A stretch of DNA of 64,000 bases from Nageia nagi (Eukaryota; Plantae; Pinophyta). Under the pieces are notes generated by a model. It was given only the letters and a program-made list of their open reading frames with translations, searched no databases and had not been told where the DNA came from. The DNA lies in NCBI GenBank assembly GCA_050084985.1, contig JBITNC010000001.1, positions 141,236,001 through 141,300,000 of the forward strand, in the 5' to 3' direction. The position numbers and the translations under genes are program-made. This document shows, in pieces, positions 5,223 to 28,849 of the stretch. The stretch's first letter is position 1. Every line of letters starts with the position of its first letter.

Positions 5223-6322
5223 CTAAGGAGTTGCCCCCATGAGGTAGACATAGAATTCTTCTCTCACTACATGATCTTCAATCCTCACGCCCAATTTTTT
5301 GACAATTGTATCACAAATGGTGATTACTCCATTTGTGTTGGCTACCCTGAATCCCTCAAATCCTTTCGTTGGAAGGTTCTTCTTGGCAACAAATTGTTCA
5401 TCAATGTAATTATGGGTTGCTCCCCCATCAATCAAGACCAACACTTCTCCTATGGCCTTGCCACACACCTTCAAGGTAAAAATTATAGAAACACCTCTTG
5501 AAATGATGGCCAATGTCCTTTTGTAGGTGCTTGTGTGTGGATGTCCATGTTCTGGTTGTTTTGGATCTAGATCTCCAAGCTCCAATTCTAGATTTGAATC
5601 TTCTTCATACGAGATCACCTCAATCAAGTGAACCCCCCCCTTTCCTAAACAACAGTGACCACATTCCCATGTATTCTTGCAATTGAAAGACAAATTCTTC
5701 CTTCTCAACTTGCTACGGGTCTCCTTATCCAAGGTCTTAGCATTCAAACCTTTCCCAAATTGCAACGAACTCTTCTCCATGCTCACACCTCCCTTTTGTG
5801 ATGGTCCAAATGTGGTGGATTTGGACGTGGACGTCAATTGGGTCTTCCCCATAGATGGTTCTAGCGTCAATGCTCTTTTGATGGCATCCTGGAGAGACGT
5901 GGGGCCAAAAGCTTTCACCATTCCTTTCAATGGTTCTTCTAACCCTTCCATGAACATGAACCTCACCCTCTTATCCGAGACGTTAGGCACCATAATTGCG
6001 ATTCGTTGGACTCAACAATATATGATTCCACATTCCCCTTTTTCTTCACTGTGGCCAGATCCTGAAAGTATTCATCTTCATCTTTATGATCAAATCGGTT
6101 GATGAGTCTCTTGCCAAATGCATTGAAAGATCTGATTGAGCCATGGCCTTGCGTGGTTAAACCATGGTACCGCCAATCATGTGCTACACCATCCAGATAT
6201 AGTGTGGCAAATTGAATCGCATCTTCTTCAAACATAGGGTTGAGGGTGAAGTATGTTTGTAGTATTTGCATCCATGCTTTAGCCGTTATCTTCTCTCCTC
6301 CATTGTACATGGGAACTTGCAT
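5223..6322 (-). pseudogene. Gypsy gag-aspartic protease (frameshifted)
   Basis: VPMYNGGEKITAKAWMQ...FATLYLDGVAHDW (retrotransposon gag); RRKNLSFNCKNTWECGHCC (decayed zinc knuckle); VLIDGGATHNYID (protease). Confidence 0.88.
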
Positions 6323-7232
6323 TTTGCTTAGCCTCTGCTGTAGATTTCTCCTGTCTCCTCCATAATCCCCTACCTATGGGCATCCATCATCCATCTTCTT
6401 CCCCTTGATCCGTAGAAAACTCTCAAAATTCACGGTTAATTTGAATTATGAATCCATAGCTTGATCTGTTGGATAAGTGCATTCAACTCCATGGAATCCA
6501 CATGACTTGGATCCCTTGCTTGTCTTTCCTACCGTTGTATAAACATGGGCCTAGATGGCCATTGTATGGGTGGTTGATCCAGCTCTTTGGACAACTCATG
6601 AGTAATGTAGCCCTGTGCAAGCCATGGAGCACTCCTAAAGTCTTTCTCCCTTGATAAAAAATCCATGAATCCTGGCTGTACTTGCGTGGTATAGGCTTGC
6701 ACATGTGGTAGGGAGCTCCATCCTCCCCTTGGACCCAGTCGATCTCCTTATTCATCCTCTTTCTTCGAATCTCTTTCTCTTGCGTACCCACATCTGTGGA
6801 GTGATGGTGCCCTAGGCTCCTTTTCTTGCCTAGCTTCCCTTGTTGAGCTAGATCTTTGGATAAAAGGTGTTCTCTCTTCCATTTTTGGTGAAGGTTCATG
6901 AGCTCTTCTTTCTTGGGTGTTTGAGAAGCATTATGAGAATACCAATTGTGTCAATAGATCAATCAACAAATCAAACCTCTCTTTACTTTCTTTTGAAGCC
7001 GGGCTGAGGGATCTTCTTTTAACCGGAGGTGTTTTTACTTCTCTTGCGTCTCATCTTCCTTCCAAGGGTTATTTCCTCCCTCTGTGTGTCCAACCATCTC
7101 CTCTTGAATCTCCTCCGAATTCTCCTCTTGATGGGGATTGGATTCTGGATCCATCCTCTCTCTTCTGAGAATGGATCTATTGTTAAAGCAAGGTGACTTC
7201 TCAGGCTGGCTAGATCTTAGCTTTGATACCAT

Positions 7233-8085
7233 TGTAATGTCCCTTTTTAGGAATTTTCAGTAATTTCAACAATTATCAAAGAAATGCTAGAATACACCCA
7301 ATATGGATGCCAAAGAATAAGATCTGAATATTTATTGCTCAAAATGATGAAGTTCAATGCTCAACAAGCATCCAAAGGGCCTCTAGGGTTGGACAAATAC
7401 CACAAAAGCTCATAATGCAAGAACTTTGACCAAAATGGCCCAAGGTTTGGCTTACTAGCTAGATCTGGTGTCTCTACAAGATGAATATGTATCTCCAAGC
7501 CTGACGTCACACTTCTGAGGTTGCAACTGAATACTGAAGGTCTTCATAGGAGCTTGATGAGGCTCCACAACTGGAAGGAGCTTGATGAGTTTCCATTGAA
7601 GGGCATGAAAGCTTGATGAGGTTTCCGATCTAGACAAAAAAAGTGGCAATGGCCAAATCTAACAAGAGAAAGTTCAAATGTGCAAAGATATCCTCCAACC
7701 ATGCATCCACCACCCTAAATAGTTGGACGCCACCCCTAGGAGATAGACGTCACACCTAGGGATGTCCCCTTGCACCTTGTGATCTCCAAACTTGGACCAT
7801 GCATCCTTGGGCTCAAGACTCAGTTTCGGGATCCATAAAATCACTCCTAGATGTCATAAAAATATTTCTAATTTACTCAAGGAGGGAGATGTCCCACTTG
7901 GGGCTCACAATTTGGTCCATGGGACCCATAACTTTTCTATCCTTGAGAATTAAATTAAATAATAAATCATTCCTACTCTTATTAAAAGAGGGGCTTACAA
8001 ATAAAATATCTCCTAAATTACAAATGACTCCTAATTAATACAAAAATATATTTTAATTGTGTAATTCCCATTTTGGGACATTACA
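7233..8085 (-). repeat. 5' LTR of the gypsy element (853 bp)
   Basis: Direct repeat of 3138-4019; adjacent to the PBS. Confidence 0.93.
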
Positions 8086-8490
8086 TCATCACTCTTAGCT
8101 TTGAATTTGGCCCTCTCTAGTGCATTTTTGGTGAATGAACAACTATCAATTTCTTGAGCCCCTTCATTCAAAATATGAGCTTTGACTCTTGTGTAAGAGC
8201 CCTTGTATGTCTTCCCATTGTCACATAGCTTGCACCTCCATTCCCATGAACCCCCACCAGGTAGTTGTTTGATCTTGTTCACATACTTCTAGAGAGGATA
8301 GTATTTTGCTTGCCTACCTGCTTGAGAAGCTCTTGGGGCTGGAGAAGAGCCACTGTGAGAAGCCATGATACCTGCAATAACAAAGAAAGTGTGAGGAAAG
8401 TGTTGGCTGCCATGAAACCTGCAATAGTTGAACTGTTGAAGCTTTCAAATCTCCAAACTCTTCTTCTTGTTGCTTCTGTTGTAGAAAACC

Positions 8491-8976
8491 ATTCTTCTTG
8501 CTTTTGGAAAAGTGAGGAATGATGAAATGAAATGTAATAGGGTTTGTTTTATGCATAGTAGTGTTTAGTTAAATGTTTCATGAGGTTAGAATGGGACCCA
8601 CGACTTTTAGAAGGAGAAAAAAATAAAAAAATTGATTTTTTAAGTGCCTTTACACCTGAAATGCTGGCATGAGAGGGGGAAACGTGTTTCCAAATTGGGA
8701 AACCCCTTTCCATCTCGGGAAACATGATTCTGAAACATGATTCTTCTTGCTTTTGGAAAAGTGAGGAACGATGAAATGAAATGAAATAGGGTTTGTTTTA
8801 TGCATAGTAGTGTTTAGTTAAATGTTTCATGAGGTTAGAATGGGACCCACAACTTTTAGGAGGAGGAAAAAATAAAAAAATTGATTTTTTAAGTGCCTTT
8901 ACGCTTGAAATGCCGGCATGAGAGGGGGAAATGTGTTTCCAAATTGGGAAACCCCTTTCCTACTCGGGAAACACGT
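8491..8976. repeat. ~249-bp tandem duplication in the hAT subterminal region
   Basis: ATTCTTCTTGCTTTTGGAAAAGTGAGGAA... begins at 8491 and again at 8740; the copies are near-identical. Confidence 0.9.
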
Positions 8977-9554
8977 TTTCAAATTCATAAAAGTTCACCG
9001 AAATGCAAACTGGCATTTTGTGCCAGTTTCAGCATTTTGGAGGGTTTCCGAAACGGAAACTCTCTCTGGGGGAATTTCCTGCAACATAGAAATAATCTTT
9101 CTTTTAGAAGTCTAGAAATGATATACAGGTCCAGCTATAGGTAACTAAAAGTCTATATCCAGTATTAAAAGATGGACCAATTTTCTGACAGTTAAATCTA
9201 ATTGGCAGTTCAAGAAAAATTTTAAAGTTCATTTATCACTTATTTTCTTATTGGATATTTGTTTTTCCATCTGTATATATTGTTTCTGGAATTAACTACC
9301 AATCAGCAGTTGCCATCACAAACAGAATGTCAATGTGATGGAGGTGTACATAATCTTGAAAAAGGTTTCTAAACAATCTGCTTCCAGAGAAGAAAATTAA
9401 AATATACTTCCATGGTTTTCATTGCTTTTTTAGAAAGTGAAATCAATGCCCTGGAACTCCTTTGCTTTAAGACGCATTCTATGTAGAGGTATAGATTCAT
9501 GATTCATCATCTTAGATATAGTCATCACTTAGAATGTGTTCTTGGTCTTTGCAG

Positions 9555-10339
9555 ATTCTAGATATTGAATGGAAAAATGGAAGAGCACAGTTCAGTGTTT
9601 CCTTCATAGATGAAAATGGCAAAAGTGAGTTAGCTTTCTCCCAAACAGTAGTTTATTTCTTTAAATGGTAATATGTTCTTTTTTTAAGTAGAGCTCTCCA
9701 TGATCATTTGGATCTTTCTTAAGAAGCATTTGATTTTAGTTGTTCAAATTATCATGTGTATAGAGAATTTTTTGTTTTTGTTAATGAATTTCTCTTTGAA
9801 GTTGGTAAAATTCTTAAGAAGCATTAAGCATAATCTCTTCTAATGTAAAGTTAAGTGCAGACAGGAACTCAGTTATTGAAGAAGATTACACCAAGGACAT
9901 GGCATTAGTTGAAAATGGTCCTTCCATTCGACCAAGACCGCCAACTATGGTCTATCATGTTTCAGAAATTGGTGGAAACGAAGTTCATCCTTTAGTTAAA
10001 GACAGCTGGCAAGCTGGGGATATGGTAGAAGTGCGTTATGGAAGTTATTGGATACCTGGAAGGGTAGTTGAGATATCGTGTATCAAAGAAAAAATGGTGG
10101 GTGTTTTTTTTTTTTGGTGAAAATGTGGATCATTTGGTGACGTATATATTTGTTATTTCAGTGTTTGAAATACTGTTGAGACTAGATATTACATTAGTGG
10201 GATCTTATGCTAAATGGGATTGTTTTAGATATATTTTTATGATGGCTCAAGTATCAAAGTTGATTCAAGCGTGGAGATCAGGGCACAGGTTAACTGGATA
10301 GGAAAGAGCTGGTTTCTTGTCAATAATGACACACCTCAG
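9555..10339 (+). CDS. Agenet (plant Tudor-like) domain exons
   Basis: Spliced peptide ILDIEWKNGRAQFSVSF...IRPRPP...WQAGDMVEVRYGSYWIPGRVVEI...IYFYDG...EIRAQVNWIGKSW shows the IRPxPP, GDxVEV..W..GxV and LR...W..gkW hallmarks of tandem Agenet repeats. Confidence 0.8.
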
Positions 10340-13300
10340 GTAAGTGAGGAAGTATCTATTACCATTAATGATGGTCAGTTTCGTTGCTTTATAATAAAAG
10401 TAAAACTGTTGATGGAATACTAGTAGTAGAAAGCGGTTAGTAGGTTACTTCTCGTCTTTCTTTTCCTGGTTAGGGAACATCACTCATCTTTTCTTTAAAC
10501 GCTAGTGTTAGTTGACATTTCTTTATGTTGATTGTTTAGGTGCATGGTGAAAGCAAATTCATGAAGAAATTTAAACCATATGTTGGTGAAGGCCTGTTGA
10601 GTCCAAACAGAGAAATGGTCACAGAATTTGTGAGAGACATTTCCACTGAACACCCTTCATTTGCAAGGGCAATCCAAAAAAAGTCTCTCAGGCGTAATGG
10701 CAAAATGGCAAGTTTCTTTAGTGCACAAGTTTGTGATTTTTGGCTCTATATTTTATTCAACTTAGAACAACTTGTATAATGCAAACCTTTTTTCTAGCAA
10801 AATATTTGATCTGGAGTTTTCTGTGAATGCACTGCTTGCTTTACTTGGTTTTGTCAAATGCCATTTTCCATTTCTTTCTTATTTCACTTGATGTCAATCT
10901 TGAACACAGTCTATTTTTTGTTTTGCAGTCTTTCCCAGTAATGTTCATGACTAATTATCTCTCAGGATCACAAGGCACTGTGACATTTGAGGACAGTGAA
11001 GGGCATTTTTGGGTGGTAGACTGGACTGCATATATGCAATCTGGGCGAAGACTTGTGTTTACCACTGGATGGCCTGAGTTTGCTTCCGATCACAATGCAA
11101 AAGAGGGAGATGTTCTACTTGTTGAAATCTTGAATGCAAAGCAATTTAGGGTTCAAATTTTAACAACTGAAAGTGGCATGTGCTGTAGAGGGAATGATGT
11201 CCACATAAGTAAGAAAGAGGTTAGCTGTTCAGAAATTTTTATTATATGTTGAATATTTTTGGTAAAGATCATATTGGATTTTTTGTCATTCTTGATGGTA
11301 CAAGAGACTAAGTTTTAGCTATTCTGATGACTCTAATAAATCGCATATACTCTACAGTGTACGTGCATCTGGTCATAGATTAGATTTCACAATTATTCGG
11401 GCTGGAAAGAAAGTATAAATTAATTTTGTCAATGTGATATTTTGTCTAAACAATGCTGGTTATGCTTAGCATTAGAAGAGCCACAACGAACGCCAATTTT
11501 CCCGAGGGACTCAACACATGAGTGCTGCTCATAGTTGAGTGACTGGGGCTGAGGGGGCATGACTTTACTATCCTTGAAGGGTGCGTAGAGCAGCCTCTCA
11601 GGTCTCTTGTAACAATGGCAAGTGAACTGCTGATAATTGTCAATATGTTTATTTTGTTAGTTGGTAGAAGGGTTGATGAAAGGGCCCCAACCCTTTTCTA
11701 AAGTGGTATCATATGACATTTGAGACACATCACCATCATGTGGGGTGGGATTTGGTGGGATTTGAACATGGGACTCTCTTTATATCATTTGAGAGTTTAC
11801 ACACCCACCGTTCGTCCAACTCCCCTAACATTTCGTGATGTGATTGTCAATATGTTATGTTAAATAAGATTACATGATTTTGAGGCATAATTCTTTTTAA
11901 TTAGTTAAATTAAGTGTAATAAATGATATTCAAAAGTGTGCCTTGAATATTTCCCAAGATATTCATAATGTTGGCATTGATTCATTCCCATCTTTGTATC
12001 TGGCTAAGAAGAATAGCAACTAGATAGAATAGGGAACAGAGTTAGAATTGAAACTGAATATACCAAACTATAGAGATTTTTATGAGTGACCACATTCAAA
12101 ATTGGCATTATCTTATATCAAACTTAGTCAGGAAATTATTATTTTAATTTTGTTGGAACTTTGGCTGGAAAGGAATCAATGACTTCTTGAAAGAAAAAGG
12201 CAAATTTGGGAATAAAATTATTCATATGATATATGACATGGTCCAGTCTGCTTGCCTAGTGTTTTTGAAAGGAACACCAACAATTAGCACCAACTTATTG
12301 AACCTACCTAAACACTAAGTACGAGGAGGTTGTTTATGCTTCTTGAAAGAATGACATTCAAGCTAAGCACATATAGGAAGCTTTGGAATCATATTTTACA
12401 CTTAACCTTGATGCATGCATCATTATTATCGAGCATGGCAGAAGCAAGATGTTTAGCAGGGGATCATAAAGGAACTGCACTCATATGTTAGTTTATTTAT
12501 CTTGGAGTCACCAAGATTAGTGTGGTCCTGTAACTAACCCAATGCAAGTGGATTAAAATTGCCAAACCATCTACTATCATGTATCTAATGAAGCAATGTA
12601 TAAACAGTGGAAACAATCTTGCAGAAGGATGGCATGACTTTATTAATTATTAGACAGACCCAACTAAACTACTCGCATACTTCACATTGCTTAACATGGG
12701 TTAACTGAATAGAGCCTATATTTTAGGTTAATCTACCTTTCACTCACTTCCTCCAACCTGAAAACCTGAATAGACCGAGTTTTGTGTGGCAAACTTAAAA
12801 TTCTTCTAGTTGAGCAAAGGTTGATTGTCTTTAGAGTCTCCAAGACTATTGCTTGAAATGTTTAATATGTTCTTCCCATGTTCGCTGTACAACAAAATGT
12901 TATTAAAGTTCACAATAATGAATATTGCTGAGACTGTTGCAACGTTCAAATAAGAGTTCATCCCTCTCATACAAGCCTTACCATCAAGATGTAGTAAGAC
13001 TGTTGCGATGTCCAAAATCCAAGTAAGAGTACAATCCTCTCGTAGAAGCCTTACCTTGTTTTGAATGCGGTCTTGTGAGATTCTACCTTCTGTGATAAGT
13101 TTCGAGGTGTCCTGATTTCAGATCTAATTTATCAAGTACTTGGATTTTTGCATTTGATATAAAATGTGTCTATTTGATTTCTGGTGGACCTGAAATGTTT
13201 TTTGAGACCTTGATTAAGATTTTAAGGGTTCTGGAGGTATCAGGAAGTATTGAAGCAAAGGTGTTGCCAAATATCCCTAATTTGAGTGCTTGGGTCTATT

Positions 13301-16300
13301 TGGTTGATCCCTTAAAACTTTGATGAAACTATTGATGTCTCATTGGTGCATTATTCTTCTTTGTAGAGCTTTCAATCGCCATTAAGGTTTTTGAGATGCC
13401 TCTCGATGGCCTTTTGCACACTTCAAGGGTTGTCCTATGTGCTGCCATGGTCACTAATAACCTCCAATGGTCTCCATCCAAGCTTCATTGTTCGCTTTTT
13501 CCATTGCTTGTTTTCATCAATCTTTAAACTTCATCAAAACTTTTTCTCACATAAGAGAGATACTTCGGTATCAAAAATAGTATGGGAGTTTCTCATAATG
13601 GAACAATGTTGTTAACATTAATAGACCACTTTGTCGTATCAACTACATGGATTTGAGTAGAACTTGCAAACTTGAACTTGCTTGCTAATTAAATAATGAA
13701 TTCAAATGGCTATAGGTTGTCTCTCTTTGTGTATGCTTAGACATTAGTCTCATTGTTCTTGGTGGTACCCTCTTCTCTAATTTAGCTGTCCCTGCCTATT
13801 ATTAGTTCATCTTCTATATAGCAAACTTCATCTTCTCTAGTAGAAATTTGATGGGAGCATCCATGTGGTTTTCCCTTCAATACCACTTGTCACGGCCCAC
13901 AAACCATCAAACATAAATCTACGACTTTGTGCCTTGCCTTTACTTGGATTTAGTTCTCACACCATTGCTCGTGCTATTAGCAATGCCATTGCTCCTTTAT
14001 TTTAGACAATATCCATTGTAAGTCCTTTCAATCAAGACAAAATATATCTTTTTGTCTCGCACCTTGAGGCAACTTTTGAATCCGTTCTGCATCTCCTCCA
14101 TCTTTCCAAACCCATACCTTAGATTTATGTGCCATGATCTGTTGGTATGATGATGAATGTAAACCATTACATTGGAGATTTATTTTAGGTCATGATTTTG
14201 CTTAACAGAAGAGAATAATGTTGTTCTCTAAGGTAAAAAGTGAGAATTTCTTACCTTGAGGCATTATGAGCTTCTTGAGTTGTTCCACAACTTCCCCAAG
14301 CCTTTTGCTGCACCTTTACTTCCTAAGAAAAGTGTCTCTATGATTCAACTTCAAACTTGGGTCTCATATGCCAACTTCCTTTACAACCTCTTTGACGAGC
14401 TCATTGCTTGTGTTTCCTCTTCTCCTACATCTTGTTATTTTGTTAGCAAGGAAACTTTGTACTAGCAAGGCAACTGATTGTGAGGGAGTTCAAGTTGAGT
14501 TTATCAAGTTTGGCATTGATTCTCTTATCTATCTGACCAGCTATTTGCTTCTTCGCCTCTTTTTGGTCTTAACATATTATTGATCTAATCGACAAGTCTG
14601 GGTACAACATAAATGCTAATAACTATGGAACTATCATGATTGAACACATTTTTGCGAAGTTGTATGCCATAGCCTTGGATATAAGCTTTATGATTATTTG
14701 TAGCAAGCAAGTAGATTTTAAGAGTGATTACCAAACAAATGACCATATTTTTACTCTTCGAGCTATCTTGGAAAAATTCATTTTTGGTTGGTTATCTAAG
14801 GTATTTTTTTGACTTTAGGAAGGCCTTAATATAGCTAATAGGCACAAGCTATTTTAGGAGCTACAGGACATTGATATCTCGATGCTGTTCATCACCATGA
14901 TGATGAGATTATATAAGGTAGTTGATGGGTGTCATTGGCCTGCTTCTAGGTTTCCCATGGAGGTTAAAACTTAAGACTACTATTTGAGTTAGACAAGGAT
15001 GCCATCTTTCTCTCATCCTCTTTGGGATTTACATTGATGAGCTTGAAGACTTCATTTGTTAGAACACTCCTATCGAATATGGTTGTTCTCTCCATCTTCT
15101 TATATTTATTATGCTCTTTACTAATGATGTGGTTCTTCCTACAAACTTTATGATGACTTGCAACATCAATTGGATGCTCTTGCTCATTTCTAGAACTTCA
15201 TTATCTATGAAGTTAACCCTGATAAAACCAAAGGTTTTGATCCTCAATACCTAAAGTACATAAAGAGGGCTTGTACAAGAAAATTAAAACTCTTTTCCAA
15301 TGTGCAATCCATCGTAAGAGGATAGTTCTCCATAGTATATTGTTTGGATCAAGTTTCGTCTTCAATTAGGGAGCATTTCCAAGATCACTGTTCTTCGGAG
15401 GTTGAGGTCCATGGGTGATTGGAGAATGCGGTAGGGAGAAATACTCATGTTTGGCCCTCTCTTTGTTTGATTATTTTGCTTCTTAGAGACTTGGAGGACA
15501 ACATTGAGGGAGTTTTTTTATCAACCATTTTCTTCACATTATTAGTAACTCCATAAATTGATTTCTATTCATTAAATTATTTTATTTCCTACCATATATG
15601 AAGATTATTTATAAAGCAATCAAAGGACATATATTTGTAATATGTTTAAATCATGTGGGTCTCCCCATGTCAATCCCTTGGTCCCAAGATGGCATAATAT
15701 GTCCAAAATTTCTTTTCAATTGAAGATGAGATCATCACTAATTATATTAAACGACTTGGGACCCATGGCCTTAGGATCCCACTTGGCCAACTTTGAGTTT
15801 GTTCTCATCATTGTTGAGTTGAGACATATTACCACATTTCCAAGGAGGATAGGCTTCGTCATCTCTTCTCTATTTAGGAGGTGGGGAGGAGAAAATTTTA
15901 TCTTGAGGTACCAATGAGATTTGGAGGAGGTATTGCTAGATTAGAGATACCCAATACGGTCACTTGCTACCTTTTTTTCAGCATCCTGACCAAAGGTTCT
16001 TGGATTTGTACTTTTGGGAAGCATTTATGCACATGCCCCACAATATGCACGTCTTGAAAGATTCTAGATTAATCATTTACTTCTTGATTCTCATCTCTAT
16101 TATTGGTGCACCAAATGATCATTTGAGTCCATCAGGATCCAAGTTGATGAGGAAAGACATTCCTAGAGTTGTTTCTTGCTCAACATTTGTTCTCCAAAAT
16201 TAGGAATTTTCTAGTTTCAGATCTTTTACTAAAAATACAAATTTGCTATTTTTAACATTTTCTATTTTTACAGTGTTTTTTTTTTCTTAAATTTTAGTAT

Positions 16301-19300
16301 TTGCAAAAAATAGAGTTGTATAAAGATACAATTTATTAGCATGCTCAAGAATTCAAGTTTGTAATCCAAGTTTTAAAAAGAATTTTCTTGCTCAAGAATT
16401 CAGCCAAGGAATTCTCAAGCGTAGCAGTTTTTGGATTTATGTTTTGCAGATTTATCTACATAGAAATCTGCTATTGATACATAGTTTCTTTTGTTATTAA
16501 TGATTGCTGGTTATTCTACTTTTTGTGGATTTTTTCTCATTTATAGCTTGCGAGTTTGTATTGTAGAATGTTTGTTTGTTTACAGTAGTTACTTTACATG
16601 TTTTAAGTGTCTATTTGCCAGTTTTAAGCTACGTATGTATAATTCTACCTATCCAATTGTTGGTATTGGCACAATACCTTTTTGCATGCTGTTAGGTGAT
16701 GTGCTTGAGTTGCATGATGTTTTATTTGCGCTTAGATTAACAAATAATCTCTTGTTTGCCTTAGCTATCATTGATTAAAGTATAAAGTTGAGTTTGATAA
16801 GCAATAGTGTTTGATGAGAGATGTTATGATTGTTGGTAAAAGAAGTTTACGAAGGAGGTTTGTACAAGCTTCTTGCAAATATTGGAAAATTGAAGCATTG
16901 GTGCTTGACAATGACACGTTTTGTGAGCTTTGGCACAAATAATTTGGTCACTTGCACTATGGAGCTTTTCCTCTTCTCAAGAATATGGTGGAAGGACACT
17001 CGTAGACTTCAAAGTGAGGTAGAATGGTGTATGCCAAGGATATGTACTTGGTAAGCTCTCCAGTATTTCCTTTCCTACCCATGAGCAGAACTCAAGAGAG
17101 ACTCTTGAGTTGATCCATTCAAATATTTGTGGACCCATGTACTCACTCTTTTTGAAATGTAGTCTTTACTATGTTTCCTTCATTGATGGTTGCTCATGAA
17201 GAAGCTTGATTTATTTTATGAAAACCAAAGATCAAGTATATAGTTAATTCCAATTTCCAAGAGTTTAGAGCGTTACTTGAGAATCATACTAGAAAGAATA
17301 TTAAAATATTTGACTTAGACAATGGAATAGAGTATACCTTCCTTGAATTTGATTCTTGTAGGGAAGTTGGTATTGTGAGGAGGTTTACAATACCATACAA
17401 CCCACTACAAAGTGGGGTTGCAGAGAGGAAGCATAGATCTATCATTGAGATAGCTAAGCCTGTGATTCATGAAATGGACCTTCCTATGTTTCTTTGGGTA
17501 GAAGCATGTATACAATTGTCTACATCTTAAATAGATACCCTTATAGAATTTTGAAGGAAGATCAAAGGAGGAGGCCTTTTCTTAGGAAGAAGCCTTAAGT
17601 GTCTCATTTTTGTATTTTTGGTAGTCTTATTTACATTCATGTGCCTTTTGAGAAATGAACTAAGTTGGGGCCCTTTAGCATCAAAGGAATTTGGTTGATT
17701 ATTGTGAAAACTCAAAGGGCTACTCGATCTATGTTCATGCATGGCGGAAGACTGTGGTTATTAGGGATGCGAAGTTTGATGAATATACTTTGTTTTCCAA
17801 GTCTCAGGCCATGGATGTAGAGGACATCGATCAGCTTGTTGGTCTAGTTTCAGATCAAGAAAGTACAAAAGCCCTGTTGCTAATCAACCTACTTTTAGTA
17901 AGTTGATGGTTTTCCTGAACCTTGCAGGAGGCACAAGAGCAAGTTGGAGCACGAAGAACTTCTTTTCAGGTGAATCATCTACCTAAAAGGTTTCCAAATT
18001 ATATTGCTTTGATGATTTTTGTTCTTGATACGGAGCCACTTATTTTTGAGGAGGATAGTTCACAAGTATGGCATGATGCTATGGTTGAGGACTATAACTC
18101 CATTTTTCGAGAATGATGTTTGATAGATAGTTCCAAGACCTCAAGGGAAAACAATGATTGATTCCAAATGATTGTATAAGATTAAGCATGAGGTGGATGA
18201 TAGCATTGAGAATCACAAGGCTCACATTGAGGCAAGATGATTTTTCCAAAAAGAGGGAGTTAATTATGATAAGACTTATGCTTCAATTTAGAGTGATTTT
18301 AGCTTTGGCTTTATGCTTTGGTTGGTCCTTGTATTAGATGGATGTAAATATTGCTTTTGAAAATGGCAATCATTGTATAGCAGATATAAATAAAACAGCC
18401 AACAGGTGTTGACATCCATGGGCAAGATACCCATGTATGAAGATTGAAGAAAGCCCTTTATGGGCTGAAGTAGGCACCAGAGGCTTGATATGACCAGATT
18501 GATCAGTACTTAAGCAAGTTGGAATTTTTCAAGATTAGTGTTGATTCTAATCTTTATTTTTTGATTGAAAAACTTGATTTGCTTGTTTTAATACTTTATG
18601 TTGATGATCTTATCATTGCTAGGAATTCTAACATTCTTATTTGACGGTGCAAGATAATATGAAGGATATTGCCTTGTTGCATTACTTTTTGAGATTAGAG
18701 GTTTGGCTAATTGTAGTCAAAGTCTTCATTGGACAAGAAAAATGTACCTTGACTTGTGATAAGTTAGATTTGGTTGATCCTACTCTTTACAAGAAGCTGA
18801 TCGGATCGCTTATGTATCTTGTGAATACTAGGCTTGATATTTGTTATGCAGTTAATATCTTTGATTCAGTTCATGGTTGGGCCTAGATAATCTCGTTGGA
18901 AGGTTGACAAGCCAGAGCTTAGACATTTGAAGGGCACTTGTCATTATGGCATGCAATACTTAGGAGATGGTGAACTTCATGGCGTTGTTGATGTAGATTG
19001 TGCAAGAGATGCGGGCACATGGAATAGCACTTCCAGAGCTTAGACATTTGAAGGGCACTTGTCATTATGGCATGCAATACTTGGGAGATGGTGATTTTCT
19101 ACTTCATGGCTTTGTTGATTTAGATTGCGCAAGTGATGCGGGCACATGGAATAGCACTTTCGATTATTGTTTCAGCTTAGGATCATGTATGATTTTTTGG
19201 TCCAAAAAAGAAGTAGACAATTGTTGGCCTTAGTTTAGCGAAAGCTGAATATATTGCAACATCTTTGGCTAGTTGTATTGCAAGTGGACTGAAAAGTTGT

Positions 19301-22300
19301 TTGGTGAGATCTTCGAGCCCATGGTTATTCATTGTGATAATTAGAGTTGCATCAAATCATTTGAAAATCCAATTTTCTATGATCACTTTAAACACATCAA
19401 GATCAGATTACACTTTCACAGAGATAGAGTGTAGTGGAAAGCAGTGGTCCTGAGATATCTTCCTACAGATTTGCAAGTGGTCGATATTTTGACCAAGCCT
19501 CTTGAAAAAGGGAATTTTTAGTTGCTGAGATCCAAGTTTGGTTTGGTGGAGAACACATTCCTTGCAAAGAGAGAGTGTTAGCTTTAGCTGCTCAACATTT
19601 GTTCTCCAAAATTAGGAACTTTCTTATTTGAGAACTTTTACTAAAATTATATTTTTTCTATTTTCAGAACTCTTTTTTAGCATTTTCTATTTTTAGAGTT
19701 TTTTTTTCAATTTAGTATTTTTATTTATAGTACTGATATAAACAGAGTTGTGTATACATATGGTTTATTTTTTTTCTTGATAAGAGCCAGCTTGCTCTAT
19801 TGTAATCCAAGTTTTAGAAGACATTGTAAGAGATTTTCCTTGCTTAAGAATTTAGCCAAGGAACTCTCGAGTGGAGCAGTTTTTGGTTTTACGTTTTGAA
19901 AATTTGACTCCACAGAAATCTGCTTTTAATATGATTTAAGCTACACATGATTCAAGCTTGCTGAGATTTAAGCTACACATGATTCAGATTTATATGATTT
20001 TATATTTCTGAATTTATATTATGAAATTTCAATGTTGTTATCCCTTCTAGTTGCATAGGTCAAGGGAGTCCTTCGGCTATTTGTCAATCTAGGCCAACAT
20101 TACTTTCTCATTCACATGCTAGTCAATTTGGACAAACACGCTTTCATGATTCCTATCATGTTCTATGGGATTTTTGGTTTCGGATGGAAGAAGAATCATA
20201 GGGTGGAGTGCCCAACTGGGTATCCTCAACCCTGCCACTCCCATGAAGTATTCTCAATCATGTATTGGCTTTTTCATGTTGATTGATGATGACGATGATG
20301 TAACTTCTACTCTTTAGCACTTCAACATATAGATCCTTCTTTGCCTGGTGCAGCGTTCTGTGTGGAGCCTGAAGGTATCCCATGTTACTCAGATATATTT
20401 GTTGTATATTATTTTAATAAGTTCTGTTTACCTTTAAGTATTTTGTTTTAGAGCCCTTTTTGGAGTTCATGTTTTGAAAACAAACATTTTCTTGTTGAGT
20501 TCCATTGGCCTTGATCATTGGGCAATATTAATTTTTCTTTCCTTTCTCTTGATCGATGACTGTATTCAGTTCACTGGGTCTCTGTCAGCAAAGCTTCCAC
20601 TATCCACCTAGCTGTCGTCAATCTGCCTATTAATTATGGATTGATTCTCCTTGGTCAATCATACTTGATGTCCAGAAATGGGAGTTGGAACCCTTTCCTT
20701 CTCTTTGAGAATTTTGGATTGATGAGGTTACCTAAGTAATTGTCATTACCATTTTGCTAGTATGTTTTGTCTTTATCTCTTTGTTACAATTTGGTCAGTC
20801 ATTGAATGAAAACTGTCATTTTGGGGCTTCTTACGACAACAGATATCTTGGAAGTCTTTTGTGTTAATTAAAATTCATATAATTCCTCTCTTAATTCTCG
20901 TTTTATTCTTTTTCTCTCTTACTTATTCTCTAATGATAGAATTTTCTGTGTACTCTATTATTCAGTTTTGTGCTGTTGATGTCACTTATGCCTTGACAGT
21001 AGCATGGAAATAGCGTTGGCAAGTGCACAAGTATACACTCCGCATACTCATTCCATATGAACTTATGGGTGACTATCTTAAAGAGTATCTTTGTGTGGAG
21101 TAAAATATTTTGTGGCCAAATCTCAAAAGCAGACTAAGGTCTGCCTGCTGTAAACTCTTTTCTTTTATATAAGCTTCAGTAAATGGAAAGGCATCAGATC
21201 CCTTTGCCACGCATTAGTCTCCAAATGTTTAGACAACTACTGTTTCAGTACTTGGAATCTAGATGATGGTATGTGTGAGGCCACTGTGATAGATGTGCTA
21301 GCCTGTCCAACCTTCTTGACATATATCAGATGGTATTTTGGTCAAACGTTATAGCTTTCACTTTCTGTTTAGTTTCTTATATTTTTTTACAGGCTTAATC
21401 ATTTCCTGTGATCGTTACTGCAGGTAACCTCTAACATAAACAATATTTCAGATTTGGGGACCAAGGATTTTCAGCCAAGTTCACATTTGCATGTCGTAAA
21501 GAAGAAGTATGGCACCATTGACGGGATTCTTATGAAAAGGGAGGAGAAACTGCCTTGTTTTAGACATCCAAGGTATGGAACTTCACAACAAATAGCATAC
21601 AAAGTATTGGTGGTAATGTTGATGTTGATTGCATTCGAACAAAATTGTTGATTCTGAACATGCACTTGAGGGAAAAACTGTTTCACTATATTTTTGATAG
21701 TTACTCTGTAGTCAATGTAGCTCACTGAAGAAGAATCTGTGAACAGGGATTTCTTGGATTTTACTAAATAATTGTATAAAAATAGACCACTCCAACATTC
21801 AATGAGTGTATCAAAATGGAAATAATCAATTTGTATATTATTTTGAAGGGAAGGGGCTTCCTAGTTTGTTCTTGGTTCTTTCTACTAACATAGTTGTAAT
21901 TTATTCCCCATTATCCAGGGGCCTCCTATTAACCTGACTGAGCCTGTAGTGGGCAAACCATGAATTGTGCAAGGATTGAAACAAACTGATTTTTCTCTGC
22001 TTTCTAATTAGAGATGGCTCATGGGATCTAAAGAATAAGCATCGGGAAGTATCATTTTTTCATATTCTAACTTCTACTACTGTATATCAACATTCTTTCA
22101 GTGGTGGGCGTCAATTTGTTGCGTCTTTCTGCCAGTCCAGTATGGAGAAATGTTCGGAGTATGTACTTCATGGCTTTGGATTCTGCATGCTTCATATTTT
22201 GGAAGATCCTTCAGCTCCATATAAACAATGTGATTATATTGTCCTGAGTAGTGGATTGAGATGCAGATTTCCAGTTTCCCTTCACGTTGCAGATATGAGG

Positions 22301-25300
22301 TTTTTGATCTTTCCTTGATCCTTGTACACGATTTCTGTCTTTAGACCTTTATTCCTTTACTGGTTTGAGATATTTTTATGGAGTATGTTTGATTCTTCAC
22401 TTTGTTGGGTCTTTTCAAGTTAGTGTTAAGGTATTTTAATGTCATCTAGAGTTGTTATGAATGTGGAATGCAGTATGCCTAATTCTGCTGAGAGATGATA
22501 AACAAACTTTAGCAATAATGTAGATAGCATCTGTGGAAGGTCATATAAGAGATAACGATTGTTGGTTTATTTCCCTTCCAGATTTTGTCAGATCCATAGG
22601 CAGATTGGAATTCCGAATTCAAGATTTGAATGTGCCACTGATGAGGAGAATCATGGTTGCGGGAAAATGTCATTGTTAGTACTAGCAGCCACAGTTGCTC
22701 ATCATCATGTGGAACGCTTTGATTCTTCGCAACTGTGGGAACCTATGAAAAGTAAAACAATCTTGACTGGTGATACTTGTGGAACAAGTTCACTACCTGA
22801 AGTTTTGGTCTCTCCTCCATTAAACTTATCCTCAATAAATGTGGTACAACTGAAACAATTGCTGCAGGTTTGTGAACATGCACCAAGCAATGGACAGTCT
22901 GGAAAGGATTTGTCCCAGAGGAAAAATTCAGGCCATTGTAGTTCAGTTATTGTTCAGGATGGTTTGGATGTATTTGAGTCAAGCAATACCTCGGAAAGCA
23001 TAAGAGGTAACAACAATGGTACTGGAAAATGTTTTACTGAAAGTGGATATCAGCATGGTCCTAATTCTTCTTCTTTCAAGGATTTCATTGGTGAACATGT
23101 TAATCAGAGAACCACTGGTACAGTACCGTGTGACATAATCAAACACAAGAATGATGTTGAATGTACAAGCAGGGGTCTGTGCATGGAAGGACTCTCCTTT
23201 GAGAAAGAACTTTTTGAAAGAGATAACCCATGTCCAAATGCTACATCTTCGTCTCCATGGAACTCGTTGAGAGAAGGAACATGTCAGGTCTATAAGAAAA
23301 GTGTCAGGATTTTGTGGACCGCTCCATGTTTTGGACCCAGTGCTACGAGAAGGTATTCTTGGTTTCATGGTATGCCCCCTTTAGTGGAAGTAGGACCTAT
23401 TGATTTGATGAGAGTAGGATTGATGTGGACTCCTGCAAGATTGTTGCAATGTGATGTAAAGGATTCTTTAGCTAAGTGCCCTAATCAACTTTCAACACCC
23501 ATTGTAGATTTAGGAGAGATGGACTTGACAACCATGGGTTTGAAGTGTCCTGTTCGTGAGTCAAAAAGAAGTGTTGGAATCTTGAAGAAGCAGAGGCAAT
23601 GGTTGAATACTAAGGAATTAATCCCCAAGGGAGATGGTCGTCATGTATCCTTTTCTCGTTTTACTGGAGTAACAAGGCGACCTTACAGTGCTGAAACACA
23701 AACACTGGAGGGAAAGGGGCTTTGGTTGGGAACCTATTCCACCGAAGATGCAGCTTCTCATTTATATAATGATGCGGCTCACATTATTAGGTGTGAAGAA
23801 GCAGTGGCAAATGTTTCTCAGGGATCTGTAGCAGACTCTGTAATTCAACGTTCAAGATCCCTTAGGGAGCACGCAAATATGTTCAAGGCACCAAAGAGGA
23901 AGAGGTCAATGAATAGCAAAAAGAGAGAGAAATATCAGCTCTTAGGGAATCAGAGGGCAGCAAAGAAGTTTCAAAATCCTGCTTCTATTCTGAAAAGACC
24001 TCCTACGCCTCTTGATACTGAGTGCCCTTCGATATATGGAGATAAGGATACATCTCATCACCTTGATATGCATAATAAAAGCTCTATTTTTTTCAGATCT
24101 AGTCCAGTTTCTGAGGTTGAAGAGCAAACTTTCATCTCTGATGATCTTCATATGGGTACAGCTAGGGATGAACACTCACAAGAATTTCATAGTAAAAAGG
24201 ATGAAGAGTCAAAATTGGTAGACAGTTATAGAAGAGTGTATGATAAGAAACAAAAATTAAAGAAAACCATTCACCTGAATAATTCCAGCTTAAGTGTTTC
24301 TTTGCCGGAAAACATATTGGGTAGAGAAAAAACTGCAGATTCATATCATGGTGGAAGTTGTCAGAAACAACAATTGAGGTCCATTTCAACTGCTGTTACT
24401 GAAATTCCAGACATTGATCACTCTCCAGGGTATTCAAGTGGTACTGATAAACCAAATGATAATGACTTTGAACAAGGATATGATCACTCAAATTTGGCAG
24501 TTGGTGGTATAGACCCTCGTGAAGATTATTTAGATCAAATAGGGCAGGACAAGGCAATGACTAATAGTGACAGTAACTTTTCATCTCCAGAACAAAGTGG
24601 ATATCTTGCAAAGGTTGAGAATGAATCACACTTTTATGGTGTGAGAAAAATGTCTTCTGGCAGATTTGAGGCAAGTCTATATGATAGGAAAAGAAAGAAA
24701 AAAGTTTATGTTGGCATGTACGACAGTATGATTGAGGCAGCTCGTGCAAGAGACTGGAAGGCAATAGAACTGGGAGCTGCTTCTGTTCTTAACTTCCCAG
24801 AACTCCAAGAGCAAACTGATCTGGAAAATGAGAATAGTATGCAATCTGCATTGTATCAACATACCGTTAAAGCCGAGAAACATGCTATGCTTAACCTAGA
24901 GCAAAAAGTAAAAAGGCAGGCTGAAAATATCCAGAAGCTTCCTACAGCCAAAAGAAGTAAACTCAGTGTGCATTCTGACCTTACAAACAAAAAGGTCAGC
25001 AGCCTTCATGAGCCAAAGGTTGTGACATCTGAGGAGCAGAAGTCTACTTTACTGCAGACCGAGGAAGCAGAGGTGAAAGATGCAAATATTTGTTCCCTTG
25101 CTTTGATCTGTAATTCCTTGGAGTCTGGGAAAGATGGTCGTGATCTAGAGCATACTTTAGCAACCAAAGGAAAGAAGAAAAGGAAATCAATATCAGAATA
25201 TGCTGATATTTCTTTTAGCAAGACAAGTAGAATGAAAAATGGGCAAAAGTTGTCTCACTTCGGCAATCACTGTTCACATGTGCCACGGAGGGGTTTGGTC

Positions 25301-26745
25301 TCTGGATTTGATTCAGATCACATCATTGAGTCAGACTATGCTCGTGTATATAAAACAACATCTAAACGGAGGGCTATGCAAAGTAGGAGAGGTCTTGACC
25401 AGGTCAATGTTAATGAAAATGAAAAATTGGCTACAGAGAAGGAAATTATAGATAAGCATAATTGCAATGTTGCAGATGGAAAATTCAAATTATGTATGAA
25501 TAATTCAGAAGATGGTATTATAAGCCCTGTTAATCAAAAGGCAAATGCAAAATTCCACTCACTTTCAAATGTTGTTACTGGTAAGAATGACTGTTCATCA
25601 TATTTGAATGTGCATACATGTATTTCCGATTTGGAAGTGGAAATGGCTGAGGATGATATTTGCATAAATAACACACTGAAATCTGTGCAGCCTATTTCTG
25701 ATGTTGAACTAGAAAGGGATAAAGATCTTCATGTTCATTGTGAAAAAAAGGGAAGTTTATTTGCAATGCTTCCCAACACTAAAGTGAAGAAATTTAGGTC
25801 CCAAGAGGGTCAAATTTGAAGGATCTACACTCTACAGCAGATTATTCTATGCCAGATCAGAATTCACCAGAAGAAGCCTCTCCTATCATTCAACAAGACA
25901 CAAAAAGGTCCGTGAATTGTTCTCAACGATCTGGAAAAGCAGGAAGATCTCAAAAGTTCCATCATCCAGGGGCCCCTAAAAAATCAGGCTTCACAAAGTA
26001 CATGGATTACAGAGGTGTACATAGTAATGGAAAGAAATTTCAATCCATATATTATGATCCTGTGTCAAATAAGCACACTTACTTGGGAACATTTTCTACT
26101 GGAGAAGATGCTGCAAAGGCATATGATCAAGTTGCTTATGAACAGGTTGGGATATCCGGAAAACTGAATTTTTGTCCTACTATTTTAGAATCAAATGATA
26201 ATCAAGAGACAAACGAGGAAACTGAAATGCACCCTCAGCTGGAGCATATATCAGGTTTTCAAGAGGTTGCAACTTCTGGGAGTAGCCTTAATGATGGGTT
26301 TGTTTTGGAGAAAAATCAAGTAGATTATGAGAGAGAATCAGAGCTTGTGTTAGAAGATGAACCCTCAACAAGTGATTCTAATCATGACTATTTGCACCTG
26401 ACGAAATCCAACTTCAGGTTTACACTCGATAGAAAAGATATTCTTCAAAATGAAGAAAATGGTCCAGATGGAGATTCAATCCCGAGTCTTCTTAAGCCAG
26501 AAATAAGAGGATGCACGTCTTTAAGGGGTATGACCTTGCCACTTGAAAGGGGAAGCAAATCCAACTATTCTGACACACAGAACCCAAATCTTGTTGGCAT
26601 AAATGGTTTTGGTGGTGGGCCTGATTCTAGAGTTTGGGGTGAACCTTTGAAGGCCTGTAAAGTTTTATGCTTCTCAGAACAAACTGAGCCTTGTGTCTCA
26701 GGTTGTGAAACTTCACCTAGCTTGGTTGATACTGCAAGATCTTGA
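9555..26745 (+). CDS. Multi-exon Agenet/Tudor-like + B3 + triple AP2 domain protein (5' end outside the window)
   Basis: Exons 9555-9624, 9861-10096, 10229-10339, 10540-10707, 10929-11219, 21424-21572 and 22582-25819 all have AG acceptors and GT (one GC) donors with matching phases (1,0,0,0,0,2); total 4263 nt, divisible by 3. ORF 25816-26745 continues in the -1 frame with a third AP2 domain. Confidence 0.8.
10540..11219 (+). CDS. B3 DNA-binding domain exons (REM-like)
   Basis: HPSFARAIQKKSLRRNGKM|SFPVMFMTNYL...VTFEDSEGHFWVVDW...LVFTTGWPEFASDHNAKEGDVLLVEI, a canonical B3 pattern, split by a GC-AG intron at 10708-10928. Confidence 0.9.
11430..11635 (+). ncRNA. Candidate structured intronic RNA element (unidentified)
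   Basis: GC-enriched island in an AT-rich intron with three hairpins and a closing stem (see findings); matches no family I recognise. Confidence 0.35.
11650..11842 (-). mobile_element. tRNA-derived SINE
   Basis: 14-bp TSD ATTGTCAATATGTT (11636-11649, 11843-11856); - strand A-box-like TGGACGAACGG (11808-11818) and B box GTTCAAATCC (11758-11767); A-rich tail on the - strand. Confidence 0.8.
14610..15250 (+). pseudogene. Non-LTR (RTE-like) reverse transcriptase fragment
   Basis: Broken frames give NNYGTIMIEHIFAKLYA, DYQTNDHIFTLRAILE, DFRKA, RQGCHLSLILFGIYIDELE and LFTNDVVL. Confidence 0.8.
15260..16170 (-). mobile_element. Ty3/gypsy integrase-end remnant
   Basis: - strand KWDPKAMGP (GPY/F-like motif, ~15755-15785) in heavily decayed sequence. 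Confidence 0.4.
16177..19930 (+). mobile_element. Decayed Ty1/copia retrotransposon (gag deleted)
   Basis: LTR-like direct repeats GCTCAACATTTGTTCTCCAAAATTAGGAA at ~16178 and ~19590; 3' LTR starts TGTTAG at 19576 after a purine tract. Internal order: protease (VGIGTIPF..LHDVLF), integrase (LELIHSNICGP, PLQSGVAERK), RT (QMDV-like, LYVDDL), RNase H (TDLQVVDILTKPL). Confidence 0.9.
18912..19159. repeat. ~121-bp tandem duplication inside the copia RT/RNase H region
   Basis: CCAGAGCTTAGACATTTGAAGGGCACTTGTC... at 18912 and 19033. Confidence 0.9.
21424..21572 (+). CDS. Internal linker exon of the Agenet-B3-AP2 gene
   Basis: CTGCAG| acceptor, open in phase 0 (VTSNINNISDLGTKD...CFRHP), ends in phase 2 at AG|GTATGG, matching the phase-2 acceptor TTCCCTTCCAG| at 22581. 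Confidence 0.75.
22582..25819 (+). CDS. Large exon with AP2 domains 1 (~23657-23817) and 2 (~24626-24799)
   Basis: SRFTGVTRRP...LWLGTYSTEDAASHLYNDAA and HFYGVRKMSSGRFEASLYD...YVGMYDSMIEAARARDWKAIELGAASVLNFP; basic NLS-like clusters (PKRKR, RKRKKK, KKKRK). Confidence 0.88.
25816..26745 (+). CDS. C-terminal segment with AP2 domain 3 (-1 frame relative to the upstream exon)
   Basis: YRGVHSNGKKFQSIYYDPVSNKHTYLGTFSTGEDAAKAYDQVAYEQVGISGKLNF (~26005-26178); overlaps the upstream stop by 4 nt. Confidence 0.85.
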   Translation: MKDLHSTADYSMPDQNSPEEASPIIQQDTKRSVNCSQRSGKAGRSQKFHHPGAPKKSGFTKYMDYRGVHSNGKKFQSIYYDPVSNKHTYLGTFSTGEDAAKAYDQVAYEQVGISGKLNFCPTILESNDNQETNEETEMHPQLEHISGFQEVATSGSSLNDGFVLEKNQVDYERESELVLEDEPSTSDSNHDYLHLTKSNFRFTLDRKDILQNEENGPDGDSIPSLLKPEIRGCTSLRGMTLPLERGSKSNYSDTQNPNLVGINGFGGGPDSRVWGEPLKACKVLCFSEQTEPCVSGCETSPSLVDTARS

Positions 26746-28849
26746 GAAAAAAATAATTATTGTTTTGTCACTTGTAGCCTGAAGACTCATCATTACAAAT
26801 TTCAGAGTACCATCCATCCATGCTGCATTTTTTGCCAATTTAATAGAGGTTAAAGCATAAAGTTCCCATAATTAATTTGTTGTGGGATTGTCTTGTGGCA
26901 TTTTATGGATTAACACAGCCAATGTACAGATTCAATATGATGCTTAGGAGTATCAGAATTCGGGTTATCTATACAGCCATTGAATGCAATGTATATTGTT
27001 CTCAGGAATGATTAAGATCAGCAAACTGTACATGTTCATTTTAACAAGTCCAAACATGCAGATGTTGCTTAACTTTTTAAGATGCCTAGAAAAGTTAAAT
27101 ATATGCAATAGTGTGGGGCATGAGCGTCTATAATTCAGAAGTACAGTGCAGGTGTATGTATACTTTGTGCATCTTTGTAAGGAAGACCTTGATGCTGTCT
27201 TTAGCACTTTTCATAACTCACACTTTGCATATCTGTTTCTCTCTTGCAAATTTTTGGAAACTCTACTATCGTTGCCCACACTTGATTTTTCTTCTAAAGC
27301 AAGGAATTCAGACATTTGATGTACTTAAGTTACAATTATAGATTTACAGCTTTCTTTGGGACCAGTACTCGTTGCATTGAATTTAGATTGAAAGGAAAGA
27401 GCTTTTGCCAATCTTCTGCATGGTTATAGTCAACCTTGTGGTGCGAAAACTTGCTCTTATTTGCGTCAGTTGTTGATTGTGCATCATCAAATCACGTGCT
27501 TTTGTGATGCACTTTATGATATCTATTTTTTTCATTATAATGTCCATACCATTTTGAAAGGTGACAAAACCAAAAAGAAATTCTGAATTATCCGCGTCGC
27601 ATTTTACTTTGAAAGTTTGCTATCATCAAATGAATACGAGATTAAACGACTAGTGTGATGACTTCATTATTTGCAATGTATGGACTTCTTTTCTGGATGC
27701 TGGTGGTATTAATGGATAGGTAACCCATGTGATAAATTTGTTGCTGTTACTCTATTGCGAGAAGCATGCCCGATTAGCTCTACACTCCAGAAGGGAAACA
27801 ATCTCGTCCTTCCACCATTCACTCTTTATAGGAAATAAGCAAAGATGTAACAAACCAGAATGTGCAGGAGAAATAATTGGAGCCAGTAAGATTGATCAAT
27901 TGATATAAACTTGTGTCATGAGAGGATGTATTGCGAAGATATTAGGAATATTTGACGTATGTACCATTGTGTAAGAATATCCCCATTCTATCAAGGCTCT
28001 TGGATATGTCTGCAATTATATGTTTTCATTGTAGGGACGCTTCTGTTGTTTTTTTAGAACATAGTATTTCATCCGTAAATGGTTTCTTATCTATTAAAAA
28101 TTGCAGAGGAGTGCTTTTGTAGAACCACCTTTTCTAGGACACCGATTTTGCCAGCTTAGTTTTCTTTCAGCATCTTGAGATAGATTCAACCTAATTTTAT
28201 TATGGTTGGAAAACTAATTACATACAATGAGTTGTAGATAACTATTTATATAATCATTGTGTTAAAATTTAATTGGTTGGATGTTTTAATAACAGTGAAA
28301 TGACATTATTTTATTGGTTAATTCAATGTAATATGAATCCAGTATTGAGTTACTTCTAAACACGAGTTCAGAAAAGCCGCCTATTGATTCAACAGTCCTT
28401 GGCATGACTTTTAGAAAAAATGTTGATTTATTGACATTAATGACTATGGTACGACACTAAGACAATTATATCAAAATAAGAAATCAACAAGTGGATGTAA
28501 TTCGTAGAAGGCTTCAACTTTACTTTTTTGTACTTTGAATAGGCAAATTGAATCATCAACCTATCAATATGTAGTCAAGATAATAATGATTAAATTTTTG
28601 ATTATATGTGGAAAATTTGTGTTCATCAGATGGCATTTTTACTAATGAAAATTTTTTATTGGACAAGGTGTTGGAACCATGAGTGGGTCAATAGGATCAA
28701 CCTCAAATTGAATTACTAGATTTGATACGCTATTCAAACATGTTAAAACAATATTCTGGTATGTAACAGTAACTAAGGCTACGAACTCTAGTATAAAATT
28801 ATAAATATCTACTATATATAACTATCTTGATTGTAGGCCAAAAGTCTTT

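Follow-up and report, generated by a model that had tools for sequence, protein, structure and literature searches.

Proteins in which a B3 domain occurs together with three AP2 domains have been described in two publications. A study of 2019 (BMC Plant Biol, PMC6781369) reported TcA3Bz1 of Taxus chinensis, a single unigene encoding three AP2 domains as well as a B3 and a zf-C3Hc3H domain, together with Ginkgo Gb_05581 and Marchantia PTQ32953.1 that share these domains, the latter adding an Agenet domain N-terminal of B3, and found this clade to be absent from angiosperms and of unknown function. In a study of 2024 (PMC11122039), Pinus taeda PITA_21665 was described as having three AP2 domains along with a B3 at its N-terminus. 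Here we analyzed a stretch of 64,000 nucleotides (nt) from Nageia nagi (assembly GCA_050084985.1, contig JBITNC010000001.1, positions 141,236,001 to 141,300,000; hereafter the window, numbered from its first letter), having on the plus strand within 9555-26745 a number of short open reading frames (ORFs) in addition to two longer ones, of 1086 amino acids (aa; 22559-25819) and 309 aa (25816-26745). These pieces link up as a single reading frame, belonging to a single expressed nuclear gene with introns enlarged by retrotransposons, and the gene is a member of the published but functionally uncharacterised A3Bz family, not a new kind of system. An earlier reading of the letters alone (the sequence-only reading) had placed the architecture outside the described families, but the two papers already describe the clade; it had also considered the case of an already characterised family, and the family is indeed found in the literature, although not characterised with regard to function.

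The order of the domains in the encoded protein is tandem Agenet, B3, zf-C3Hc3H and the AP2 repeats R1, R2 and R3, with long disordered linkers rich in Ser and Lys. The N-terminal B3, the zf-C3Hc3H domain and the three AP2 repeats, each with its own orthologue, are shared with the TcA3Bz1 clade, but PMC6781369 gives an Agenet domain for Marchantia only, whereas here the gymnosperms (Taxus and this genome) carry a tandem pair. This Agenet module in gymnosperm members and a degraded R1 in the present genome constitute modest new details of the family. The RAV/TEM proteins (RAV1, TEM1) also hold AP2 and B3 in one protein, but these are of about 350 aa, with their only AP2 at the N-terminus, B3 at the C-terminus and neither Agenet nor zinc finger, whereas the gene studied here has the reversed order with B3 before three AP2 domains, has extra domains, and has a B3 closest to VRN1/REM; it is not a RAV gene, in agreement with the sequence-only reading, which had kept it apart on the grounds that RAV has one N-terminal AP2 and no Agenet. 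Proteins of the AP2/ANT type likewise have multiple AP2 repeats per polypeptide, but these are two with a short conserved linker, whereas here three repeats are found ~250-400 disordered residues apart. In their predicted fold, the ~160 residues at the N-terminus resemble AGDP1, ADCP1 and AGDP3 (5zwx, 6ie4-6ie7, 7yta, 7yt9), with a sequence identity of just 14-22%, and AGDP1 and ADCP1 differ in being Agenet cassettes without DNA-binding domains. Finally, KANSL2 and INO80D share the Cys/His module encoded at 22102-22299 and the start of exon 8, but these proteins, which belong to the NSL acetyltransferase complex and the INO80 remodelling complex as subunits, lack B3, AP2 and Agenet and are here likened by domain only.

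Transcripts and exon structure

Using a word search, we found that sequencing runs from several studies contained 97-99% of the big exon, and four runs, one per study, were assembled onto 21350-27349, giving one contig each (X1 to X4) of 5.9-6.2 kb. All four contigs omitted 21573-22101 and 22300-22581, both having GT..AG ends, and therefore represent spliced RNA. Each of them joined 21572 to 22102 and 22299 to 22582, whereby the exon encoding the zinc finger was included, and none used the 21572/22582 junction that the sequence-only reading had proposed. The 30 letters preceding 21422 were GAGGGAATGATGTCCACATAAGTAAGAAAG in each of the four contigs, which is identical to the window sequence ending at 11217; because exon and intron both end in the AG that comes next, this confirmed four times the junction 11219/21424 over the 10.2-kb intron, as that reading had predicted. 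Upstream of 21424, contig X2 held 877 nt as compared to 876 nt for exons 1-5, and contig X4 held 571 nt as compared to 570 nt for exons 3-5, and this agreement shows that the two contigs end exactly at exon borders, with X2 starting 1 nt ahead of exon 1, by length arithmetic, and X4 starting 1 nt ahead of 10229. Contigs X3 and X1 reached 114 and 337 nt past exon 1 on the 5' side, respectively, so that at least one further 5' exon must exist. The gene consequently has at least nine exons in total, of which eight lie within the window.

These eight exons, all on the plus strand, comprise 1,795 codons with zero internal stops when a missing base behind 25799 is marked N, a figure that comes from a local count, as the domain and homology searches were run exon by exon and not with the joined protein as query. 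The window accounts for 1,795 residues of the full protein, whose length is about 1,825. With this splice-compatible model and the four contigs, the proposal of the sequence-only reading that the small ORFs and the 1086-aa ORF form one frame was borne out, although it had counted seven exons and overlooked the one at 22102-22299. Its estimates of >1420 aa, or ~1730 aa with the last frameshift bridged, were right with regard to the bridging but fell short of the 1,795 codons in the window.

A partial protein of 793 aa from Taxus chinensis (P0005, KAH9308085.1) was collinear with every exon from 9552 to 23287, the partial model ending at the latter position, 706 nt into exon 8, with an identity of 41-80% (B3 80%, zinc finger 71% and linkers 41%). 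Exon 1 (9555-9624) has an AG acceptor and a GTGAGT donor, shows 77% identity to Taxus aa 30-55 and supplies Agenet domain 1 with its C-terminal half (ILDIEWKNGRAQF...). Exon 2 (9861-10096), collinear with Taxus aa 55-132, covers a linker as well as the initial strands of Agenet domain 2 (WQAGDMVEVRYGSYWIPGRVVE...), for which Pfam gave weak matches to chromo/SH3-like barrels only, and exon 3 (10229-10339), collinear with Taxus aa 133-169, encodes the remainder of that domain (IYFYDGSSIKVDSSVEIRAQVNWIGKSWFLV). Exon 4 (10540-10707) encodes the N-terminal part of B3 in addition to a conserved KFKPYVGEGLLSPNRE motif, with 74% identity to Taxus and 66% to Diphasiastrum. The intron that follows (10708-10928) is of the GC-AG type with the donor GCAAGT; this GC donor at 10708 was chosen because phase, Taxus protein and contig-length arithmetic all agree with it, whereas a GT donor at 10712 was rejected as incompatible in phase with exon 5. 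Introns of the GC-AG type are a minority and are frequently missed by gene predictors. Exon 5 (10929-11219) encodes the B3 core, its last 28 bases recurring as the consensus of the loose ends in the four contigs, and is followed by the 10.2-kb intron (11220-21423) holding a decayed Copia-type element. The junctions of exons 1-5 rest on Taxus collinearity, canonical splice sites and contig arithmetic.

Further downstream, exon 6 (21424-21572) encodes a linker with 43% identity to Taxus aa 320-380 and was found in all four contigs, spliced to 22102. Exon 7 (22102-22299) encodes a zf-C3Hc3H domain of the KANSL2/INO80D type, with 71% identity to Taxus; it was found by reading 21200-22760 and is phase-compatible with both neighbouring exons. 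Exon 8 (22582-26745), one unbroken piece in all four contigs, encodes the end of the zinc finger (RFCQIHRQ), the long Ser/Lys-rich linkers, a conserved IIESDYARVYKTTS motif at about 25322-25363 and the three AP2 repeats, with the stop codon at 26743-26745. The 3' untranslated region (26746-27349) reaches at least 27317, and two contigs extend beyond 27349.

The assembly is one C short in a run of C at 25799-25800 on the plus strand, where an extra C behind 25799 was present in all four contigs, that is, in four studies, moving the frame from the 1086-aa ORF to the 309-aa ORF (from frame 2 to frame 1). There is accordingly no frameshift in the transcripts. At the frame break, the alternative of a short intron (25797 to 25838) was rejected, since the transcripts ran on without interruption and with one extra C. 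The locus would probably be split by automatic annotation, considering its 10-kb intron filled with transposable elements, its GC-AG intron and its one-base assembly gap.

Two separate genes could in principle underlie the same pieces, one encoding Agenet and B3 (9555-11219) and the other encoding zf-C3Hc3H and AP2 from near an ATG at 22142, with the joined contigs representing read-through or a minor isoform. An in-frame ATG does lie at 22142 just ahead of the zinc finger, Physcomitrium has a protein (P0002) with zinc finger and AP2 but no B3, Diphasiastrum has annotated isoforms of 1,061-1,088 aa, and contigs do not reveal where transcripts start. All four contigs, however, joined 11219 to 21424 and continued by way of the zinc-finger exon into that of the AP2 repeats, the order is that of a single protein in Marchantia, Diphasiastrum and Adiantum, the partial Taxus protein spans Agenet to zf-C3Hc3H, and TcA3Bz1 is one Taxus unigene (PMC6781369). 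A shorter isoform with an internal start could coexist with the long form but not replace it, and we consider two genes very unlikely. For the single gene as described above, we hold both the gene model and its family assignment, as a gymnosperm orthologue of TcA3Bz1, with high confidence.

Domains of the encoded protein

The B3 domain was found in 10827-11252 (Pfam E 1.6e-12) and within exon 5 alone (PF02362, E 1.2e-12, 48 bits; 80% identity to Taxus). It spans 10540-11219 and lies on the same spliced mRNA as the AP2 repeats at 23636-26190, so that B3 is N-terminal of AP2. By sequence it was closest to VRN1 (E 2.4e-4), with weak matches to TEM1 and RAV1 (E 0.02), and the corresponding region of a structural model of the Taxus protein matched At1g16640, VRN1, FUS3, ARF1 and RAV1; the domain is REM/VRN1-like. 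Between B3 and the AP2 repeats sits the zf-C3Hc3H domain (PF13891), scoring 47.2 bits (E 2.7e-12) as compared to a cut-off of 27 bits in the exon at 22102-22299, which all four contigs contain. The sequence-only reading had given the order as Agenet-Agenet-B3-AP2-AP2-AP2, and one mRNA with those domains was indeed found, but the zinc finger had been missed.

In the N-terminal region, the Agenet profile PF05641 scored 34.2-34.7 bits with the Marchantia orthologue, above the cut-off of 27 bits, and 19.4 bits with the Taxus orthologue, below it. The N-terminal 170 residues of the Taxus protein were found among Agenet clusters in the ESM Atlas with a score of 0.91 and template modelling (TM) scores of 0.63-0.72 to tandem-Agenet proteins. 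An AlphaFold model of the Taxus orthologue, made from a 7-sequence alignment, displayed two beta-barrels in residues 1-165, and its residues 5-163 matched NtAGDP3 AGD1-2 with H3K9me2 (7yta) with Z 12.6 and a root mean square deviation of 2.9 Å over 129/135 residues. The tandem barrels also matched Arabidopsis AGDP3 (7yt9) with Z 12.1 and FXR1/FMRP with Z 8.5-8.9, while unrelated entries were clearly lower, and the top Foldseek ranks were AGDP3, AGDP1 and ADCP1, with E from 2.8e-7 to about 4e-6. A search of the Taxus sequence against Protein Data Bank chains gave B3 proteins only and no Agenet. Tandem Agenet domains are hence supported at the level of predicted fold, by way of the Taxus orthologue.

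The AP2 repeats R1 (23636-23842), R2 (24608-24817) and R3 (25984-26190), all on the plus strand, gave 18.3 bits (E 0.003), 22.7 bits and 22.8 bits with Pfam AP2, R1 being degenerate in this genome and R2 and R3 being of a divergent, family-specific type. R2 was 82% identical to R2 of the relative P0163 and 74% to R2 of Diphasiastrum, and R3 was 52-56% identical to R3 of Marchantia, Adiantum and Diphasiastrum. By best BLASTP match, R1, R2 and R3 each paired with their own counterpart in Marchantia and Diphasiastrum, as did R1 and R3 in Adiantum and R1 and R2 in Physcomitrium.

A number of points weigh against the gene and its domains as set out here. Functional work on Mapoly0093s0032, TcA3Bz1, PTQ32953, Gb_05581 and PITA_21665 was sought, and the literature yielded two family surveys only. 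The contigs are assemblies, from which transcript starts, transcript ends and isoform proportions cannot be read. Taxus residues 1-30, which form the first half of Agenet 1, gave no match above shuffled controls in window positions 1-9554 by either tblastn or Smith-Waterman alignment, and neither did the N-termini of Marchantia and Diphasiastrum. This part of the window consists of transposon remains, and as the contigs extend 5' while no match is found there, the missing 5' exon most likely lies upstream of the window. Pfam gave no significant Agenet match with the single exons (9555-9623, 9863-10105 and 10232-10339), so that the Agenet call for the window rests on the 47-77% identity of exons 1-3 to the Taxus protein, and the model of that protein had a mean predicted local distance difference test value (pLDDT) of 37, reaching 60-80 only in residues 1-165. 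Each AP2 repeat, taken alone, scored under the Pfam family cut-off of 33.3 bits, and the AP2 matches given by the two long ORFs likewise fell short of it. R1 furthermore lacks four of seven DNA contacts, with R150T, W154 deleted, R162Q and R170G by the numbering of AtERF1, whereas R152, E160 and W172 are kept.

In AtERF1, the DNA contacts are R150, R152, W154, E160, R162, R170 and W172, as reportedly found by Allen et al. in 1998. The window R1 reads FTGVTRRP---YSAETQTLEGKGLWLGTY, with a 3-residue deletion (WGA) and, at contact positions, the changes R>T, R>Q and R>G, while six relatives, from the liverwort to the closest homologue, kept all seven contact residues in R1. The Trp pair of the canonical contacts is also lacking in R2 and R3. 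Over R1 the transcripts matched the genome, with no insertion or deletion. As judged from these residues, R1 in this lineage has probably lost its canonical, sequence-specific DNA binding.

Could this copy, then, be a decaying pseudogene that is transcribed but non-functional? The base absent from the assembly at 25799 would end the protein ahead of R3, R1 is without WGA and three contact arginines, the AP2 scores in Pfam fall below those of relatives, and contig X4, as one of the four, carried an extra A behind 24326 that would shift the frame, perhaps a contig assembly error or a rare allele. The extra C at 25799 was nevertheless found in four transcriptomes, whereupon the frame is open over 1,795 codons, which would not be expected for so long a frame without selection, and conservation is evident in B3, zinc finger, R2 and R3 (80%, 71%, 82% and 56% identity to the best relatives, respectively). 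Another frame break in the same assembly, at about 57170 in a lectin receptor kinase gene, points to homopolymer errors. We regard decay of the whole gene as highly improbable.

Relatives and age of the architecture

Relatives were collected using an exhaustive HMMER search with a 1,078-aa ORF and their architecture was determined with Pfam; a second homologue search with the same ORF gave three matches. Marchantia polymorpha has Agenet (34 bits), B3, zf-C3Hc3H and AP2 (P0006 and P0156; 2171 and 2255 aa), the partial Taxus protein has a weak Agenet, B3 and zf-C3Hc3H, Diphasiastrum has B3, zinc finger and three to four AP2 (P0151; 1784 aa), Adiantum has B3, zinc finger and AP2 (P0011 and P0162; 1339 and 1359 aa), and Physcomitrium has zinc finger and AP2 (P0002; 1755 aa). 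Since the order is kept across these lineages and the AP2 repeats have their counterparts repeat by repeat, the architecture is ancient and not a recent chimera, and this is an ancient land-plant gene.

The opposite had been proposed in the sequence-only reading, which took the gene for chimeric and possibly lineage-specific, and its location amid retrotransposon remains might suggest a recent chimera by transposon-mediated exon shuffling, with the Agenet-B3 exons captured beside an AP2 gene. That idea was not upheld, as a liverwort, a lycophyte and a fern all have B3, zf-C3Hc3H and AP2 in the same order, and another gymnosperm has Agenet, B3 and zf-C3Hc3H together. The order shared across land plants shows that the fusion predates the divergence of the land-plant lineages, refuting a recent chimera, to which we give next to no probability. 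In this respect, the A3Bz family represents a protein of several domains that is conserved in land plants other than flowering ones and that putatively binds chromatin and DNA.

Possible function and genomic surroundings

By analogy with its domains elsewhere, the A3Bz protein might work in the nucleus as a multivalent DNA-binding factor associated with chromatin. A methylated histone tail would be bound by the tandem Agenet, H3K9me1/2 being the most plausible mark in view of AGDP1, ADCP1 and AGDP3, while B3, R2 and R3 would contact DNA and the zinc module could be an interface for assembly with partners, in analogy with KANSL2 and INO80D. The match of the predicted fold to tandem Agenet domains reading H3K9me2 somewhat strengthens the idea that a chromatin mark may be coupled to DNA binding; as a whole, we consider the mechanism tentative and rather doubtful. 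In a wider and still more speculative version, which we think improbable, A3Bz would be an ancient land-plant factor that angiosperms have lost, reading H3K9 methylation by means of a tandem Agenet overlooked in seed plants, and delivering B3, divergent AP2 and a zinc module of KANSL2/INO80D type to heterochromatin or silenced loci, with R1, as the sole canonical AP2, having been disabled here in a shift from sequence-specific to chromatin-guided targeting. The tandem Agenet in seed plants, of a predicted H3K9me2-reader fold, and the degraded R1 refine the published description of the family, and the hypothesis would be testable in Marchantia, where genetics is available.

The introns of the gene hold several transposon remains. 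In the 10.2-kb intron, long terminal repeat (LTR) remnants were found at 16177-16479 and 19589-19931 as direct repeats with 82-87% identity and ~3.4 kb apart, and between them lie Copia-like remains of integrase and reverse transcriptase (17691-19453), with an SH3_retrovirus match at 17691-17906 and a tandem duplication of ~121-127 bp at 18912-19159 within the coding remains. The first visible intron has direct repeats of ~600 bp, 89% identical and ~4.1 kb apart (3188-3781 and 7282-7847), enclosing remains of gag and aspartyl protease on the minus strand (5223-6322); this element, at 3188-7847, is an old, truncated or non-autonomous LTR element of the Gypsy type. Just upstream of exon 1, a 239-bp unit occurs twice in tandem (8491-8978), with 95% identity between the copies, and the minus strand at 1300-2900 has what is left of a hAT-type transposase, with DUF659 matching at 2040-2288 (E 1.3e-8) in addition to neighbouring ORFs.

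Single-base insertions or deletions may recur as an artefact in this assembly, and frame breaks alone do not amount to pseudogenisation. The L-type lectin receptor kinase (LecRK) gene at 56238-58330 on the minus strand is also split by a frame break, with a lectin ORF at 57170-58330 (Lectin_legB, E 1e-72) and, in another frame, a kinase ORF at 56238-57173 (Pkinase, E 2e-43), the two having 4 nt in common and representing either a one-base break in the N-lobe of the kinase or a homopolymer assembly error.

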